Assembly: GCA_937625935.1 (NCBI GenBank)
Contig: OW569369.1
Span: 1 to 64,000, forward strand
Length of the DNA stretch: 64,000 nt
DNA from: Tetramitus jugosus
Lineage: Eukaryota > Protista > Heterolobosea
Direction: 5' to 3'
A program made the translations under genes and the position numbers. The notes under the pieces are model-generated. The model searched no databases, had not been told where the DNA came from, and saw only the letters and a list, made by a program, of their open reading frames with translations. Positions 53,782 to 62,295 of this stretch are shown here, piece by piece. Each line of letters starts with the position of its first letter. Within the stretch, counting starts at the first letter, position 1.

Positions 53782-55080
53782 ATGAACAGTTTCACACTGC
53801 ACAAGGACGATCTCAACGATGACAACAACCAACAAGCAAACACATCCACCATTACCAACACTCCTCAACAACTTCAAAAAACATACTTGAATGAACGTCA
53901 ATTCATTCTCAAATCACTCACCATACCCTCTCATGAAAGTGCAGCACTTGATGATGTGAGCAACAACGTATCTTCATCATCGATACGTGTCGATGGAAGA
54001 CAAATTTATGATTTTCGATCTGTTCAATTGTCATTTGATCCCTATCAGTTGGGTCATGTGACGTGCAAGCTTGGTAATACACAAGTGATGGCTCATGTGG
54101 TGTGTGATATTGTGGAACCATATCCTGAACGGCCAACAGAAGGTTTTCTCACCTTTTCAATGGAGCTTCATCCCAGTTTGTTTGATAAAAAGTCCGCTTT
54201 TCCCGCGTATTTATTATCGCGAAACGCGCCAACGGAACAATCCAGAGAAAATTTACAGGAGCTGAGCATTGAATGGAGCAGAGTGATTGAGAGAAGTTTG
54301 AGAGGTAGTAGAGCGATCGATACGGAAGCTCTATGTCTCGTAGCTGGAGAAAAAGTTTGGAGCTTGAGGGTCGTGCTTCATGTGCTCGATGCAGATGGCA
54401 ATGTGTTGGACTGTGCACACATTGCTGCCATTACAAGTCTTTTGCACTTTAAGAGACCAGAGGTCACTATTGATGGTGAAGATGTCATTATTCACAGCTT
54501 ATCAGAAAGAGAACCAGTGCCACTGTCTGTGCATCACATTCCTCTGTGTGTGACGTTTGCTTTCTTTGAGCGCGATCGATTGATTCGCTTTGATAAGCAA
54601 CAAGAAAAGGCTGATAGAAGGCTTGCAATGGAAGATGAACTCGTCTGTGTTGATCCCTGTCTGAGAGAAGAGCTCATGGTGGATGGAACCATGACGATTG
54701 CAGTGAACGGACATGGTGAATTGTGTGCGATTCAAAAGGGTGGTGGCTTAGCTCTCAAAACATCTCAAATTCTCAAGTGCTCAAAAATTGCTGCTGTGAA
54801 GGCACAGGAGCTGACAACCATTATTAAGACTGCATTGACAACTGATGAAGAGCAGAGAAAGGCAAGAAAGCTGCCAAATTATGGAAAGCCTGTAATTCCA
54901 GTTGGCTTCAAGGAGCCATTCGATTTTGATAAGAAGCGAGGTGCAAAGAAGGACGAAGTGATGAAGGACGAAGAAGAGACTGATGATGCTGGTTTGAGTG
55001 ACATATCAGAGGACGAGGACGAAGATATGGACGATGATGCTTTCCAAGCTGACCTTAATGACTTTAGGAATAAAAAGTGA
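53782..55080 (+). CDS. RRP45: Exosome complex subunit RRP45/EXOSC9
   Basis: RVDGR..YDFR, LGNTQV, PYPERPTEG, AIDTEALCLVAGEKVW, DGNVLD, PVPLSVHHIP, ELCAIQKGG. Confidence 0.95.
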   Translation: MNSFTLHKDDLNDDNNQQANTSTITNTPQQLQKTYLNERQFILKSLTIPSHESAALDDVSNNVSSSSIRVDGRQIYDFRSVQLSFDPYQLGHVTCKLGNTQVMAHVVCDIVEPYPERPTEGFLTFSMELHPSLFDKKSAFPAYLLSRNAPTEQSRENLQELSIEWSRVIERSLRGSRAIDTEALCLVAGEKVWSLRVVLHVLDADGNVLDCAHIAAITSLLHFKRPEVTIDGEDVIIHSLSEREPVPLSVHHIPLCVTFAFFERDRLIRFDKQQEKADRRLAMEDELVCVDPCLREELMVDGTMTIAVNGHGELCAIQKGGGLALKTSQILKCSKIAAVKAQELTTIIKTALTTDEEQRKARKLPNYGKPVIPVGFKEPFDFDKKRGAKKDEVMKDEEETDDAGLSDISEDEDEDMDDDAFQADLNDFRNKK

Positions 55081-55112
55081 AAGCAAATAATCTATTGATA
55101 TGAAACTCTGTC

Positions 55113-55573
55113 TTAGGTAATAATTACTATCTCTCCAGATGAGTCTTCATCCACTTGTGTGCAAAAGTATATTCTAGCTTCTGGGTTTGCAAAAATACCT
55201 GTGTGGGATCGTAGGACACTTTCAACACCATTGAGCAAGCAAGTAAAACGGCCATAAGGTGTTGTCCAATTGGACTTCTTTGCCTCTTCGTACCCGTATT
55301 CCCCATCCACAATTAACGATACCACATCACCAGAGTAGAACTTGTCAGTCCATTTGGTGATGCTTTTCCTCGTAAAGGATCCATTGTTGGAACAACCAAT
55401 ATTTTCACCCTCAAGGAATGCTCCCAAGAAAACAGATCCTTGATCTTTTGTATACACATCCTGAAGAATGTTCTCTTCAATGATACCCAGCAACACCCAA
55501 AAAGAGGCATACAAGAAAGTGGATCTACATACTTCCACCTTGAGGTCAATTTTGGTCGTTCCTCTTGTGTTAA
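55113..55573 (-). pseudogene. 3' half of an F-box gene split by the Fanzor transposon
   Basis: In frame with 59377-59807 once the element and one TTAA are removed (...SRPI-NTRGTTKIDLKVE...). Confidence 0.85.
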
Positions 55574-55658
55574 GGATGTAGTTCGGTGAAATAAAATCCA
55601 TAATAAAAAAATTATGATTTCCCGAGAAGACACCTTAACGCTCCTACATAATCGGGAC
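55550..55658 (-). ncRNA. Predicted Fanzor omega-RNA (scaffold ~55658-55570, guide ~55569-55550)
   Basis: Lies between the Fanzor stop and the element end; stem tcccga/tcggga, hairpin aaatcataat-tttttt-attatggattt, and atgtag/ctacat pseudoknot with the TIR. Confidence 0.72.
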
Positions 55659-57587
55659 TTACATAGCAGCTTGATGGAGTGAGCCTTGGAGGTGTTCCAC
55701 CATTTTGATTAATTCTTTTGCGACCTTTTTCTTCCTCTTGAAGGCATCGGGACGTGACTGTCCATCCATTTCTGTTCTCAGTAGATGGAGCATGTTCTTG
55801 GCCGCATTGATGTCTCTGTTGTGAGTCACTAAACATTTAGTGGTTGCACACTGTTTAACTCCTCGGACGACAGAGACATTCAACGTTCCATTCTTGTCTA
55901 TTCTCTTATGCTTGACTGGCTTCATGTGAGAATGGCAATGATGACATTTCTGACTTGTCATGAACTCGTCGATCATTTTCACTTTGAAGTGCTCATTCAA
56001 CTTTTTCAATAGCTTTCCTTTTGGTGTTGGAGCATGTCCTTTGTAACAATGACCAAAACCAGCATTGCCCATCCCAATTAACATGCTTCTTCCATTTGCT
56101 CTCTTTCGAAAGTCATTCATAACATTGGCAATCGTCTTATCTCTCATTATATAGCTATCCCAATTCAGTCTCTTCACCTTTGGGGTGCAATAAAAATTCA
56201 ACAAATCGTCCTCGACTTTCAATACAGAATTGATGTGTTCAAGGAACAGACCACTTGTAGGTACACCGGCCTGTTTGATTGAGTTTTGGAGTTCATCCAA
56301 GTTCTTCTCATTCATTTCGTTCCATTCTGCTTTGTATTTCAACAATCGCTTGGAGTTTTTTGAATGATGGGATAGATGTCTATATGTTTTGTTCGACAAC
56401 TCCCACTTCTTGCCGTCTGAATCAACACAACTCACCAAAGTAACAATACCCGGGTCAATCCCAACCAAATATTCAGCACCTTCGTTCATACTTGTTTCTT
56501 TCTTTCTCTTCTTTGCTTCTTTCTGGCCCTTGGATTCCTTTGCCTTATTGTTCTTGTGATTGCCAACGAGTTGATGTCTGAGAACAACAGAGGCCTGAAT
56601 ACCGTCAGTTCTGATAGAGTCGATTTGAATCTTCTTTATGCCAACATTCAAACACTTGAGATTGTATTTCAATTCAATGGGTTCAATTACTTGTTCATTT
56701 CCCTTCTTTTGTCCTCCTGGTTTCTTCTTCTGTTGGAGCATGTCTATCAGGTCCGTTGTACCTATCTCCATGCATCTACATTTAAAGTGGGACAAGGGCA
56801 ACAATGCAAATGATTTTGTTCCATTGCCAATCAGAAACTGTTGAACATGCCAGTAAAACTTCAGCATGTTGTTGGTGTTGTTGTTCACAAAAGATTCATC
56901 AATAATCTCGTCGGTTTCAGCACCAACAAGTGTTCGAATCTCTTGGATCAACACAGGAATAGTCTCTATCAACTCTTTTGGAGGCAGTTTGACAAAATCA
57001 TAAACTGGAGTGACGAATGTCAACCGTCTGATAATATATTCTACGACTCTTCTGTATTCAGACCATGGGATTGATTGACCATTGTGCAATTGAGCCATCC
57101 TCACTCTCAAGTACTTTCTCAGTCTTTGTTCCAATGTGAACTTGAGCATGTTAGAAATATTGACATTGAGAGACTTGGCAACGTAATTGATGGATTTGGA
57201 TAACTTCTCACAAATCTTCCTTTGCTTGATTATTACGTCATCCATGTTGACTGACCCGTTGATGAGGTTGACATTATCGTCTCTTGTCTTCGACTTGCGT
57301 CCAAACAACACTGAACCGATTCGTTGAATAAATCCTTGATTCAAGAGAGGGATATCACAATTGTTCTCCAAGTGCCTCAAAACAAATATGTTTATAAATC
57401 TTGTGAGTCGAAGAGCAATCCTTGTAATCTCCAGAGCTTGAGTTTGTATGATTGGTAACAGAGTTGGATGATGCAACAACAGAGACTTCAGACCGACCTT
57501 GACCACGTAATGTGATGAGTATTCATTCTTTTTGACAGTCTCTCTTTTTCTCTTTCTCTTACCGTCCTTAGGCACGCCTCGTGGCAT
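55659..57587 (-). CDS. Fanzor (Fanzor1-like) RNA-guided RuvC endonuclease, 642 aa, intact
   Basis: RuvC-I LVGIDPG, GHAPTPKG, RuvC-II IDEFMTSQ, Zn finger CHHC...CATTKC, RuvC-III NRDINAAKNM; N-terminal NLS KRKRKR and VVKVGLKSLL; start MPRGVP at 57587. Confidence 0.93.
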   Translation of the reverse strand: MPRGVPKDGKRKRKRETVKKNEYSSHYVVKVGLKSLLLHHPTLLPIIQTQALEITRIALRLTRFINIFVLRHLENNCDIPLLNQGFIQRIGSVLFGRKSKTRDDNVNLINGSVNMDDVIIKQRKICEKLSKSINYVAKSLNVNISNMLKFTLEQRLRKYLRVRMAQLHNGQSIPWSEYRRVVEYIIRRLTFVTPVYDFVKLPPKELIETIPVLIQEIRTLVGAETDEIIDESFVNNNTNNMLKFYWHVQQFLIGNGTKSFALLPLSHFKCRCMEIGTTDLIDMLQQKKKPGGQKKGNEQVIEPIELKYNLKCLNVGIKKIQIDSIRTDGIQASVVLRHQLVGNHKNNKAKESKGQKEAKKRKKETSMNEGAEYLVGIDPGIVTLVSCVDSDGKKWELSNKTYRHLSHHSKNSKRLLKYKAEWNEMNEKNLDELQNSIKQAGVPTSGLFLEHINSVLKVEDDLLNFYCTPKVKRLNWDSYIMRDKTIANVMNDFRKRANGRSMLIGMGNAGFGHCYKGHAPTPKGKLLKKLNEHFKVKMIDEFMTSQKCHHCHSHMKPVKHKRIDKNGTLNVSVVRGVKQCATTKCLVTHNRDINAAKNMLHLLRTEMDGQSRPDAFKRKKKVAKELIKMVEHLQGSLHQAAM

Positions 57588-57899
57588 AATGTTATTGTAT
57601 TTGTTGTGTTGTATTTGTTGTGTGAGATGAATCAAACAGCGAAAAAGACAGCGCTTTTTAAACCGAGGTAGATGGCCGTTGCCGTTGTAAAGACAGTCTC
57701 AACGGAAATTTTTACAACTGCACCAATTCCGCAGCTTAGAGGAAACTGATACAACATTTATTGTATTTTTTTATAATATATCCACCTATCTATCCAATCT
57801 TGAACGCGACAACAACAACGAAAAACACAAGTCGCACAACGAACATCAACAACAACAATCAAATCAATCAAAAAGATGGAGAGTCGACAAGAGGTGTCT

Positions 57900-58547
57900 A
57901 TTTGCAGTGTGCATTGTAGATTCTCTGAGCAAGTTTCAAGTACTTGAGGAGAATACAAGCGGTACCAATGTGTATTGAATTCTCTTGACACCACCCTGAC
58001 CAAAGTGCTTTCTGGCTGCGGCCAAAACTTTAAACAATTGATCAGAATCGCTATTATCAAACAAATGAACCAATCTGGCAATCAAGTTCTGTTCTTCTTC
58101 GAAATCTTCGAGCAATGTTGCAGCTATTGGTGAGTCGTCAGAAGGTGAGAATGTTGTCTGGTCTTCCTCATCCTTCAACAGTGGACGAATCAAATCAAAC
58201 AGTTTGTTCACTTGTTCAAATGTTGAAATCTTGTGTCCATTGTCAAGTGCGCATCTCACAATGCTCAGTGCAATAAACTTTCTCTGTTCATATCCAAGAG
58301 AATGAATAATATCACCATACTTCTCCAACTTCAAAACTGTTAGCACATTGTTGTATGACTCGAGTGGCACCAACAACAATCGCTTCAACATGTCTACAAT
58401 TTCATCTGAAGCAAGTGCAGTGCTATTCAATTGACTAGCAATGTTATTAATAATCTTGTTGACATAGTCAGTGTTATCAGGATATGTTTGAAGAGCAAGT
58501 GTCATCAATGAGATCTGAATACTCAAGTTATCGGACAATTCAACACC
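57900..58547 (-). pseudogene. VPS35: Captured internal fragment of retromer subunit VPS35
   Basis: QISLMTLALQTYPD..DYVN, LLLVPLESY, EDFEEEQNLIARLVH, ARKHFGQGGVKRIQYTLVPLVF; no start or end of VPS35; frameshift near 57945. Confidence 0.88.
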
Positions 58548-58820
58548 TCTCTAATGGTATCAATAGTAGGACAGAATTTGACAAACGTCAGAAAACTCAC
58601 ACTCATCATCAGGTCACTCGCTCTCACGATGTCCTTCAGAGTGTTTGTTTTCTGTGCTTTTGCAAGTTTTTTTTGATGAAAAAATCTCTAATGGTATCAA
58701 TAGGACAGAATTTGACAAACGTCAGAAAACTCACACTCATCATCAGGTCACTCGCATTCACGATGTCCTTCAGAGTGTTTGTTTTCTGTTTTTTGCAAGT
58801 TTTTTTTGATGAAAAAAATC
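58548..58820. repeat. Tandem duplication, two ~137-bp units inside the transposon
   Basis: tctctaatggtatcaata...tttttgatgaaaaaa at 58548-58684 and 58685-58820, few differences. Confidence 0.93.
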
Positions 58821-58829
58821 AATGAACAA

Positions 58830-59150
58830 ATGGGAAAACAAGGAAAAGGCGCCAAAAGAAGACATAACCAACACCAACAATTGGTAAAGTTTGGAGTCAA
58901 AAGAAAAGTAAGAATAACCGATATACATATTGATTTATTTGTGTATCTAGTTGGTTCGTTCCTTGGTGTAGAAGATGTGTTGAATTTGGTATTGACGTGT
59001 CGGGATTTTCGATCTTCGATAGTCAATAATCTATCAACAATAAGGTCTTATATGGACAATTTGTACTCACACTGTTTGGCCGTTTGCAAGTCAGGCTTAC
59101 CGTGCAAATTGCAAAGGAAATTTTTTGTGCCTGTTTTGATTGCTTGTTGA
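58830..59150 (+). CDS. Short F-box-motif ORF (cargo, probably truncated)
   Basis: ITDIHIDLFVYLVGSFLGVEDVLNLVLTCRDFR resembles the F-box consensus. Confidence 0.55.
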   Translation: MGKQGKGAKRRHNQHQQLVKFGVKRKVRITDIHIDLFVYLVGSFLGVEDVLNLVLTCRDFRSSIVNNLSTIRSYMDNLYSHCLAVCKSGLPCKLQRKFFVPVLIAC

Positions 59151-59376
59151 ATCAACCAGTACTTGACCGCATCCTGGGCAGAACCATGAGGCAGTATTCA
59201 TTATAATACTCTTGGCTGAGACGGAACCACAGCCGGAACAGAACCATTGATGAGATGTGGCAACCATGATCGTAAGCTTGTGTTTGTGATTGGGTGTCGT
59301 GCACCTGTTTTTTTGGGCAGTCTGGAAAATTTATAGGTAGAGTTCTATTTACGTTGAGGTCCAACGAACTACATCC

Positions 59377-59807
59377 TTAATGGGTCTCGAAGCGTTGGTG
59401 ATTCTGTAAATTTGTCGGACGTCATTTGCCGTGAATCGAAACACCTTTCCACGCTCGTCGATGATCGGACCTTGAGGGTTCATGGTTATATTGCCCTTGG
59501 AATCCATAAGGTGGGGGCTCCATCTGTGCTGTCTTGTCATCAGCACATTGTACTTCCATGTCTTACATGGAAACATTTTGTCTGTCCTTGGTCGTTGCCG
59601 CTGTTGTGCTTTCTTTTCCGATTGCACGACCGGTGGAAGGGTATCAGGTGCGGCCAGGTAGAAGAGGCGCCACTGTGTTTCAGAGTCAGCAATCTGGTTC
59701 AGACGACGATTGGCAAGGAGGATACCGAAGAGGTCTTCAACAGGCAGGAAGAGAATAAGTTCTCTTAACACATCGTCTGATAAAATAAGGAGTTTCATCT
59801 TGTTCAT
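59377..59807 (-). pseudogene. 5' half of an F-box gene split by the Fanzor transposon
   Basis: LLILSDDVLRELILFLPVEDLFGILLANRRLNQIADSETQW F-box; the frame runs into the TIR after SRPI. Confidence 0.88.
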
Positions 59808-59868
59808 GAACTTTCAATGGTGTGTTTTTGTCCACGGAACAAAATTGCGAGTTCGGGACTTTTCGTTA

Positions 59869-62295
59869 TTATCCTTTTATGTTGTGCAAGATGTAATTGA
59901 TGACCTTTGCATTCATGCCCAAGGTTAATTCCAAATGACCACAGCCTACAAACTTCTTTACATGGATATAGTCGCCGTGACACCGTTTCAATTCATGTGC
60001 ATGAGTCAGAATATTGTGTGGTGGGATAATGCGATCATCATCCCCGTACATGATATGTATCGGTATTATGGGATCAATGTCCTTGTAGTGAGCCAAAAAG
60101 TTCCATGGCGTGTCCTGACCATAATGCTTCTGATTTTCCTCTGCAGAACCATAATCGTAGGCCACAAATTTGCCACAACGCTTCATTTGTATCAAGTGAT
60201 CCACCACTTTCACCGAAGTGCCATTGTATGATTGATAGAGTATGTTATGAATATATTGGAATGGAGACTCCTCGACCGGTCCTCCGAGCAATAGTTTAGA
60301 CACTGCCACGGTCCACAGTGCCCTCAACGCAGGATGGTTATTGATGTCTTGAAGTATCTTGGCAAACAAAACCTTCTTTTCGCGAGTAGTGATTCCGAAA
60401 TATGGTATCAGTCGTCGAACCAATGGCATGCATGTGTATGACATGACATTTGCAATAAATGGAATCTTTTGATGAATTCCAGCTGGTGCCAATAACATGA
60501 CATTCTTCAAGTGATGCGCCTGATTTGTCAATCTACTATGCACTAAATAAGCCAAAATACAACCAGCTCCCATCGAATGGGCAACAACATTGATCGTAAA
60601 TCCGTCTTCATCACATCCCAACTCTCTCTTCTTGATCTCTGTAATCTTTTCAACAAAAGCGCGAACATCATAAAATGCATGTTCATTAAACGAGTAATCC
60701 CAAAAATTCTTCTTGTTAAATGCTTCCGTAGTCTCCAAATAGTGCGGTGAGAGACCGAAGCCTCTGAAATTACCGAGAAAAATGTCAACATCCTTCAAAC
60801 TGTATGCTCGCAGGGCGATCGAACGACTCACTCCACTTCCTACCCATGCGAACCCAGAATCTAGAATACCATGTTGGAAGTATACAACTTTTCGAGCCTT
60901 TCTATTCGGTATTCTGTCCATGTGTAACACGTAGCCATCTTGTGTCTCACAAGTGATTGATTCATGCGGAAATCCCTCATCTATAATCACCTGCGCCACT
61001 GTCCGATCATCAATTCCCTCCGTACTCAACAACTTCGAGAGCTTGAAGAGCGCAAAACTGAATTTGATCTGTTTCCAACACTTGATCCACTGAAAACGAA
61101 TAAACAATCGAATCGCCTGTGCAATGCTGTCAGTAAAGTCCAAGAGCGTCAGTGTGATATCTTGAATGAGACCTGTCGATTTCTTCTCATGCACATGCAC
61201 TTTGTCGTTTCTAACAGAAAATTGACTCTTTGATACCGGTGCCTGAAAGAGTGACGGTATATACCAGATCAACATTACGAACCATAAGATGACGGACAAC
61301 ACTGAATTATATATAGTTGCTAGTATGGTGCGCTGATTAGGAACGGAGCTCAATTCATCATCATCCACCGAATCTGCAGTGCTCAAATCTTCATCAATCA
61401 AGGAAGCTTCATCGACATCGAAATCGTCTTCGAGCTCTCTCTTTTGCCTGTTTTCAATCTCATCCGAAGGTAATGGCGTCTCAATATTGGCAACAATTTG
61501 CTTCTGATCATCAATTGTCGAGTTTAACATAATTGTTTTCTCTAGCAATTCATTCAATCGATTCTCCTTTGGTTTCTTGTGAGACTTCAGAGGCTCTTCA
61601 CCACTACTCAATGAAGACTTTTTCCTTCGACCAGTGCCTTCATCCGAGGATCCAGAAGCCAGTGATAATAAAGACTTTTTGGCTCGGGCCAATTTGTCCA
61701 ATGAGGCCAATGCACTCAAGCTCTTTGTCAGTGATAATCGCTGTTTCTTGTCGTCGGTGTTCATGTCTTCTGCTTGTTGCTTTTGAGATAGGGTCATGTT
61801 TGTCTCATCAATCGTCGGCACAAGTGTCGGTTGATCCCTATGACGATGAGGGTGATAATGTTCGTCATCATCACCCTCATCGTCACCAGCATGTTCATCC
61901 GATTGCTCTGGTGACAATGCAACGTGATCTTCTCTTGCTTGCAGTTTCGGTGGTGGGTTTTTCAATCTTGTGCCTACTATTTTCTTCTTCTTCTTTTTCT
62001 CCTTTAGTTTCTCAAGTAAAGGCATGGAAGCCACGCTTGGAATTCCCTTCTCCTTCACTGCTAATTCTCCGCTTGTGAACACATTTTGTTCGAATTGACC
62101 TGGCTTGTACACCAAGTGCAACAACAACCGAATGACAAAGTTTACAATCTGAGACAATAACAAAATGCATTCACGAATAAATGTTTTGATGTACTCGACG
62201 CACATGAAGATGTACGCGTCGAGAACCTTGTAAATGATCACAGTCAAGTACGATGATTTCTTGTAATTGTGTGAGGATGAAGCGTTTTTACCCAT
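59869..62295 (-). CDS. Alpha/beta-hydrolase lipase (acid lipase / steryl ester hydrolase-like) with long N-terminal extension
   Basis: TQDGYVLHMDRIP, FQHGILDS, GNFRG, AHSMG nucleophile, GDDD, GHLE. Confidence 0.9.
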   Translation of the reverse strand: MGKNASSSHNYKKSSYLTVIIYKVLDAYIFMCVEYIKTFIRECILLLSQIVNFVIRLLLHLVYKPGQFEQNVFTSGELAVKEKGIPSVASMPLLEKLKEKKKKKKIVGTRLKNPPPKLQAREDHVALSPEQSDEHAGDDEGDDDEHYHPHRHRDQPTLVPTIDETNMTLSQKQQAEDMNTDDKKQRLSLTKSLSALASLDKLARAKKSLLSLASGSSDEGTGRRKKSSLSSGEEPLKSHKKPKENRLNELLEKTIMLNSTIDDQKQIVANIETPLPSDEIENRQKRELEDDFDVDEASLIDEDLSTADSVDDDELSSVPNQRTILATIYNSVLSVILWFVMLIWYIPSLFQAPVSKSQFSVRNDKVHVHEKKSTGLIQDITLTLLDFTDSIAQAIRLFIRFQWIKCWKQIKFSFALFKLSKLLSTEGIDDRTVAQVIIDEGFPHESITCETQDGYVLHMDRIPNRKARKVVYFQHGILDSGFAWVGSGVSRSIALRAYSLKDVDIFLGNFRGFGLSPHYLETTEAFNKKNFWDYSFNEHAFYDVRAFVEKITEIKKRELGCDEDGFTINVVAHSMGAGCILAYLVHSRLTNQAHHLKNVMLLAPAGIHQKIPFIANVMSYTCMPLVRRLIPYFGITTREKKVLFAKILQDINNHPALRALWTVAVSKLLLGGPVEESPFQYIHNILYQSYNGTSVKVVDHLIQMKRCGKFVAYDYGSAEENQKHYGQDTPWNFLAHYKDIDPIIPIHIMYGDDDRIIPPHNILTHAHELKRCHGDYIHVKKFVGCGHLELTLGMNAKVINYILHNIKG

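Follow-up and report, generated by a model that had tools for sequence, protein, structure and literature searches.

A Fanzor1-carrying TTAA transposon splits an F-box-like gene of Tetramitus jugosus and may home into the empty allele

The RNA-guided nucleases known as Fanzors have a biological role that was stated as unknown by Saito et al. in 2023 (PMC10432273). Among the closest described systems is SpuFz1, carried by the element Spu-1 of Spizellomyces punctatus, in which a single Fanzor1 open reading frame (ORF) lies between inverted repeats in many full-length copies; nowhere in that genome do the repeats enclose a transposase (PMC10432273). For GtFz1 of Guillardia theta a target-adjacent motif (TAM) of the form TTAAN was measured (PMC10432273, PMC11423790). 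Restorative homing has been demonstrated only for the bacterial TnpB and IscB of the IS200/IS605 and IS607 elements, where the guide comes from the right-end flank, the TAM is the left-side target motif and the empty site is the only place where TAM and target adjoin (PMC13565253). In the present work we analysed a window of 64,000 nucleotides from the heterolobosean Tetramitus jugosus (NCBI GenBank assembly GCA_937625935.1, contig OW569369.1, positions 1 to 64,000 of the forward strand), in which a transposon bracketed by TTAA and carrying a Fanzor1 gene interrupts a member of an F-box-like gene family (Table 1).

The element sits inside an ORF on the minus strand. Reading from the ORF start at 59807, the frame enters the element as ...TCG AGA CCC ATT AA/G and leaves it as C/TT AAC ACA AGA GGA ACG; the codon phase is identical for the two TTAAs (xTT AAx), the insertion point is a TTAA within adjacent Ile and Asn codons (ATT AAC), and removal of the element together with one TTAA gives a stop-free ORF of 295 amino acids. 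Each half was used separately as a protein query against the 26.35-Mb assembly of the same organism. Both halves matched the same eight paralogous loci, and the match of the N-terminal half abuts that of the C-terminal half to the base (for instance 145091-145522 and 145523-145984 on contig C44, and 414953-415423 and 415424-415894 on contig C21; the remaining loci lie on C36, C11 and C9, at 290k on C44 and, in two more cases, on C21). The junction peptide RPI/NTRG is kept in the paralogs, the alignment is collinear, and a single open frame crosses the junction in seven loci out of eight, the one on C11 (426081-427029) being itself broken by a TAG stop. Moreover, residues 4-295 of the joined model align with four proteins of 315-330 amino acids from other assemblies, at 49-55% identity. 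Since eight paralogs and four database proteins are collinear over the junction, it is near-certain that the two ORF halves represent one gene split by the insertion. A preliminary description of this locus had proposed the fusion into a 295-residue ORF, and the joined sequence, the paralogs and the database proteins all agree with it; the finding that it had named as contrary, halves belonging to different genes in paralogs or orthologs, was looked for, and the halves abut in all eight paralogs.

The label "F-box" for this family is a weak one. The Pfam F-box profile PF00646 matched the disrupted copy with E = 9e-4 and 19.5 bits, against a curated cut-off of 20.5, which was passed by one paralog only (L037, 21.6 bits), the others falling below it. 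No Pfam family matched the C-terminal half, for which a language-model look-up hinted at a SPRY/Neuralized-like domain, taken here as a lead only. The gene family is lineage-restricted, with four matches among 5.8 billion proteins; a profile search of PDB sequences with the family retrieved nothing meaningful, and AlphaFold2 on its 9-sequence alignment returned an unusable model (mean predicted local distance difference test score 37). Three paralogs stand in tandem within 4 kb at C21:413853-417578, with a distant fourth at 423 kb.

The boundaries of the element, as first proposed, proved exact: they are borne out by the target site duplication (TSD) and the terminal inverted repeats (TIRs), by the ends of sibling copies and by an empty junction in public data (see below). 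Among the ends read in the genome, TTAA followed by unrelated flank was found at 19/19 left ends and 21/22 right ends (40/41 in total), which identifies the copies as independent insertions with duplication of TTAA. The sole deviating end belongs to L011 (C24:244717-248270), which has TTGG instead of TTAA at the right end, C before the left-end TTAA, and deletions in the nuclease ORF and in the 3' region. Two types of ends share one nuclease. The termini are GGATG...CATCC in type 1, to which the copy in the window belongs and whose final letters are ...TTTTATTTCACCGAACTACATCC, and GGTGG...CCACC in type 2, which ends in ...CTTGATCGACAGTAGACCGCCACC; upstream of that point the two are identical. 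A TTAA duplication with 5'-RR...YY-3' termini is the signature of Kolobok, unlike piggyBac (PMC9587614), and the ends would accordingly be of the Kolobok type, as judged from TSD and GG...CC termini only; no Kolobok transposase was located or linked to the repeats of the element in the loci read. The list of Fanzor carriers in PMC13565253 comprises Mariner, Sola2, MuDR, Harbinger, Helitron, Crypton, hAT, EnSpm and piggyBac, without Kolobok. Furthermore, no transposase was found inside any of the element copies read. ORFs of the piggyBac-like family PF13843 are present in the genome, and none of the element's repeats occurred in the six loci fetched for them. Matches to the repeats without Fanzor are present at C10:247207, C24:126311, C25:365136, C47:119542, C32:2812-4985 and C11:254177.

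The cargo is, by the features of its sequence, an intact Fanzor1. The 642-residue ORF was matched by PF07282 (Cas12f1-like_TNB) at 8e-10 and by SpuFz1 (8GKH, the solved Spizellomyces Fanzor1) at 1.2e-13 over the RuvC/TNB region; in the latter alignment, GIDPG, IDEF and NRD stand opposite the SpuFz1 catalytic motifs, and the catalytic residues D378, E541 and D592 are kept. A CHHC motif follows six residues beyond E541 (E541-FMTSQK-C548HHC), and a catalytic glutamate six residues before the zinc-finger (TNB) motif is the described Fanzor arrangement (PMC13565253). At least 17 copies have an intact ORF of 637-649 amino acids, with a median pairwise ratio of nonsynonymous to synonymous substitution rates (dN/dS) of 0.18 and with the catalytic residues kept in 16 of the 17; by this measure the nuclease is clearly under strong purifying selection. 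The likeness to SpuFz1 extends to the single ORF between inverted repeats, the many full-length copies, the lack of a transposase in the copies read, an N-terminal basic stretch and a conserved, RNA-like 3' non-coding region up to the right end, and the triad has almost the same numbering in SpuFz1 (D383/E541/D606). The two differ in that the protein match is confined to the RuvC/TNB part, in the TAM (CATA in SpuFz1 versus the TTAA context here), and in the host-gene cargo, a Vps35 fragment, and the two end types of the present element. With GtFz1 the correspondence concerns the TAM, since the TTAA of its TTAAN is the same TTAA that is duplicated at insertions of this family, whereas GtFz1 loci were reported without inverted repeats or transposase association and the present family has clear TIRs and TSDs, which link the TAM-like motif to the target site of the transposon; no protein similarity to GtFz1 was detected in the searches run.

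The 3' end of the element behaves differently from the rest of it. Among 15 full-length copies, pairwise nucleotide diversity was 0.05-0.19 in the body of the ORF, 0.000-0.002 in its last 190 nt, 0.028 in the 3' untranslated region (UTR) and 0.21 in the final 37 nt, the last value being high because the type 1 and type 2 backbones differ there. The loss of even synonymous variation at the 3' end of the ORF fits the prediction of an overlapping scaffold of an omega-RNA, the guide RNA of such nucleases, and the stretch 55611-55850, which folds better than shuffled sequence (z = -4.0), looks like such a scaffold; the Rfam search of the element returned no family. The same layout was observed in a metagenome contig, where a Fanzor with 76% identity is followed by a hairpin, a terminal repeat of about 23 nt ending in CC, TTAA and unrelated flank. 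Two alternative arrangements were discarded. The terminal repeat itself as guide was considered because the backbones diverge there, and such a guide would match the element's own end only; a pseudoknot between the terminal repeat and an upstream ATGTAG did not hold, since the type 2 repeat is changed without a compensating upstream change, and Fanzor1 RNAs are described without that pseudoknot (PMC13565253).

In described Fanzor1 systems the scaffold includes the 3' TSD, the TAM, which is AT-rich and 4-5 nt long, includes the 5' TSD, and the 14-15 or so non-conserved nucleotides that follow act as guide (PMC13565253). The guide indicated in the preliminary description, CACAAGAGGAACGACC, corresponds to window positions 55569 down to 55554 and is correctly placed, because this layout puts the guide directly after the 3' TSD. 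The accompanying claim, that a guide derived from the flank would match the intact F-box allele, is true by construction at the position predicted from the published layout, the guide role itself being putative. In the assembly, a perfect match to TTAA plus the 16-nt target occurs at the occupied site only. Four paralogs keep TTAA at the equivalent position, with 14-17 of 20 target bases matching and mismatches from position 10 onwards; the paralog at C9:157559 has TTAA and agrees with the target in 13 of its first 16 bases, and several paralogs have the first nine in common.

What was not addressed in the preliminary description is that the occupied site retains TTAA and the same target. In 18 of 19 insertions A or T stands directly before the left-end TTAA (background 0.60; P about 8e-4), and at 10 of 22 right ends the TTAA is directly followed by G (background 0.16; P about 1e-3); the pattern on one side does not mirror that on the other (Fisher P = 0.002). 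CC precedes the right-end TTAA in both TIR types; at the F-box site, the base 5' of TTAA is A in the empty site (ATTAA) and C in the occupied one. A five-base TAM, WTTAA, would accept empty sites and, given this CC, spare occupied ones, an inference drawn from a small sample and made post hoc. The type 1 copies had pointed to a T-rich TAM with TTT before TTAA, which was dropped once the type 2 left ends were added, as only the single base before TTAA is then constrained to A/T.

Four public runs were compared with the window over 54700-60300, in all cases as contigs. In X10, a soil metatranscriptome, a 661-nt contig joins 55143-55569 directly to 59377-59610; it covers 427 nt on one side of the joint and 234 nt on the other, each with 4 mismatches, and 4 nt (TTAA) at the joint are ambiguous. 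X3, a run labelled with the source species, has the same 55569/59377 joint, which is less secure, one side being only 26 nt long; since X3 carries single nucleotide polymorphisms in the flanks relative to the window and is polymorphic at 55355, it does not simply represent the assembled strain. In X5, from groundwater, a 2158-nt flank contig ends exactly at 55569, a joint 55569-GAC-59859 is reported at low depth, and depth falls from 12-15 in the flanks to about 0-2 over 59375-59748; on the strength of the contigs and of this one low-depth joint, the main haplotype of X5 tentatively has neither the element, nor TTAA, nor the whole N-terminal half. It is near-certain that the insertion is polymorphic, public samples other than the assembled strain having a precise empty allele and, tentatively, a deletion allele. 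The empty-site allele, proposed at the outset as something to be sought in reads, is present in the X10 contig and, weakly, in X3. JGI metagenome contigs gave no match to the empty junction (22-mer) or to the guide region (24-mer), in a collection from which records near the genome of the window may be left out, and an exact-protein look-up of the two truncated ORFs, as a trace of the occupied allele in other assemblies, found none on record. Compared with the window, all four runs have the same changes in the neighbouring gene (54747 C>T, 54906 C>T and an insertion of GAA after 54969), which makes the assembled strain the outlier among the samples seen.

From these elements the following scenario can be depicted. 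The 240-nt stretch would be transcribed as omega-RNA, the transcript continuing past the terminal repeat and the 3' TTAA into the flank, and the Fanzor-RNA complex would recognise TTAA (probably WTTAA) followed by CACAAGAGGAACG..., a combination of TAM and target that would be intact only where the element is absent, that is, at an excision site on the sister chromatid or on a homologue with the intact F-box allele. The complex would cut the empty site and repair from the occupied copy would re-install the element, and the C before the 3' TTAA (repeat end ...CC) could protect the occupied copy from cutting. The homing or drive step is a reasonable application of the published model of restorative and non-restorative transposon homing. 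With TnpB and IscB it would share its logic, but there are differences: IS200/IS605 and IS607 do not duplicate their target and leave no TAM beside the target at the occupied site, whereas TTAA is duplicated around the Fanzor1 element, so that discrimination here needs something more; their transposase is encoded or known and their homing experimentally demonstrated, neither of which holds for the Fanzor1 element. Taken as a whole, the statement that an element inserted in an F-box-like gene is combined with Fanzor homing seems to us rather probable. The homing step alone, including transcription into the flank, cutting and re-copying, may well occur, at a likelihood that we place a little short of even. 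More doubtful is the further proposal that the locus represents a natural allelic series for RNA-guided homing, with the fifth TAM base (W versus C) discriminating and a gene knockout being driven; this series would comprise an occupied allele with guide CACAAGAGGAACG..., an empty allele with ATTAA plus target, and a deletion allele that, having no TTAA, would be resistant.

Several observations weigh against homing. The TAM duplication leaves TTAA and the full target at the occupied site as well, and the WTTAA idea meant to solve this comes from 19 sites whose flanking positions were examined post hoc. TTAA at the F-box site is followed by C, which is less frequent than any other base at this position in the 22 right ends. 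In the copies and loci read, no mobilising transposase that shares the ends of the element was found, and without excision restorative homing has nothing to restore. The X5 deletion allele breaks at the boundary between flank and TSD, which is where a transposase of the TTAA type cuts, and not 14-21 nt into the flank, the distance at which published Fanzor1 enzymes cut their target. In the samples examined, empty and deleted alleles are still present, with no sign of a sweep. The missing transposase, the duplicated TAM, the scar at the TSD boundary and the persistence of empty alleles are the reasons why we keep homing tentative. Some of the same facts suit a plain insertion polymorphism, in which a transposase acting in trans knocked out a dispensable paralog, the empty allele is ancestral, and the Fanzor does not act at the locus (perhaps for want of activity in vivo or of a fitting TAM, perhaps because it serves another step in the life of the element). 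As expected of ordinary transposition, each copy has a TTAA of its own and flanks unrelated to those of the others; no copy occupies the equivalent paralog site though four paralogs keep TTAA, the break of the scar allele coincides with the TSD boundary, and Saito et al. stated that what Fanzor does biologically is unknown (PMC10432273). What this explanation leaves unaccounted for is the purifying selection on both the nuclease (dN/dS 0.18, residues kept in 16/17) and the RNA-like 3' stretch of an element without transposase, from which we conclude that the nuclease matters for the spread of the element; the orientation-specific A/T before the left-end TTAA is also unexpected from a symmetric transposase. 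We judge it a serious minority explanation, perhaps a third of the way to certainty.

A nuclease directed against the flank of its own occupied site, or against near-matching paralogs, with deletions, ectopic gene conversion or an addiction-like effect as outcome, appears improbable. It would agree with TTAA and the full target at the occupied site, with the mosaic origin of this copy from two element lineages, with the partial matches in paralogs (13/16 bases at C9:157559, the first nine in several) and with a deletion allele that begins at this very site. Nevertheless, cutting itself would be costly to the element, and the right-end flank is intact, with no difference from the empty-allele contigs in 55540-55569 among those listed. 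In enzymes of the Cas12/TnpB family the seed region covers target position 10, and it is inside this region of the related enzymes that the paralog mismatches begin. As for the possibility that the two halves are unrelated genes, or their junction an assembly artefact, the collinearity across the junction in eight paralogs and four database proteins, the exact TSD and the precise empty junction in an independent contig make it practically negligible.

Other observations concern the element itself. The copy in the window is a mosaic: its left 1.6 kb and last 100 nt or so are type 1-like (97-99.8% to L005/L030), and the segment with the Fanzor ORF shares 98% identity with short type 2 copies (L012; dS 0.056) but only 92% with type 1 siblings (dS 0.28), a pattern that points to gene conversion or recombination between element lineages. 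Type 2 elements (L002, L012-L016) have a minimal 2.7-kb form, made of repeat, about 650 nt, Fanzor and repeat, and a 4.6-kb form with cargo; type 2 is probably the older backbone, since the 76%-identical Fanzor of the metagenome contig L060 lies in a 2.17-kb element with type 2 ends. A contig of the X10 RNA library joins 55693 to 58798 with TG between, and appears to be a derivative that arose by internal deletion, with both ends kept and the nuclease lost, comparable to the "ghost" loci of Spizellomyces. In the same library, contig depth over the Vps35 part is far above that over the nuclease ORF, perhaps from host Vps35 mRNA. Lastly, a 123-aa ORF within the element (58779-59150) gave a faint F-box-like match (E = 0.034).

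Table 1. Features of the Fanzor1 element and of the interrupted gene, in window coordinates.
Feature	Position	Strand	Remarks
C-terminal half of split F-box-family gene	55113..55571	-	152 codons (55571-55116) plus stop; 58-63% identity to eight paralogs
Predicted guide-encoding flank, target in empty allele	55550..55569	-	CACAAGAGGAACGACCAAAA; assigned by position, directly past the 3' TSD on the Fanzor sense strand; putative guide
TTAA TSD, right-end (Fanzor 3') side	55570..55573	.	Read from the sequence
TIR transposon carrying Fanzor1, non-autonomous	55574..59376	-	3803 bp; termini 5'-GG...CC-3'; >20 related genome copies, 83-100% identity
Right-end TIR	55574-55588		15 nt, GGATGTAGTTCGGTG; near-complement at 59362-59376
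Backbone-specific right terminal segment, including the 15-nt TIR	55574..55597	-	Type 1 end ...ttttatttcaccgaactacatcc; type 2 end ...cttgatcgacagtagaccgccacc
Near-invariant stretch, candidate omega-RNA scaffold	55611..55850	-	240 nt; last 190 nt of ORF plus 3' UTR
Fanzor1 ORF	55662..57587	-	642 aa from ATG, start MPRGVPKDGKRKRKRE...; PF07282, 8GKH match, D-E-D triad
Captured Vps35 fragment	57936..58538	-	200-aa ORF; PF03635, profile positions 330-515 of 726, E = 1.7e-41
Tandem repeat	58567..58820	.	Two copies of a 134 bp unit, 88% identity
Left-end TIR	59362..59376	.	Identical in sibling copies
TTAA TSD, left-end side	59377..59380	.	Predicted TAM core in empty allele
N-terminal half of split gene	59379..59807	-	143 codons; weak F-box motif; paralog matches stop exactly at junction

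The finding is not new in kind; its new points are the A/T before the left-end TTAA in 18/19 insertions and the CC before the right-end TTAA in both TIR types. Fanzor nucleases have been characterised as genome editors, and what they do in nature is still to be settled (PMC10432273). Public data suffice to spell out guide, target, intact allele and scar allele for this insertion, and the position of the site within a dispensable-looking member of a gene family makes possible a direct test, comparing empty and occupied alleles and looking for over-transmission. The distinction between WTTAA and CTTAA, if true, would explain how a nuclease of the OMEGA type, short for obligate mobile element-guided activity, can reside in a transposon that duplicates its own TAM. 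If homing were true as well, a Fanzor1 would be driving a gene knockout to be retained, in super-Mendelian or restorative fashion, by a protist in the wild, and this would represent the first in vivo role for any Fanzor.

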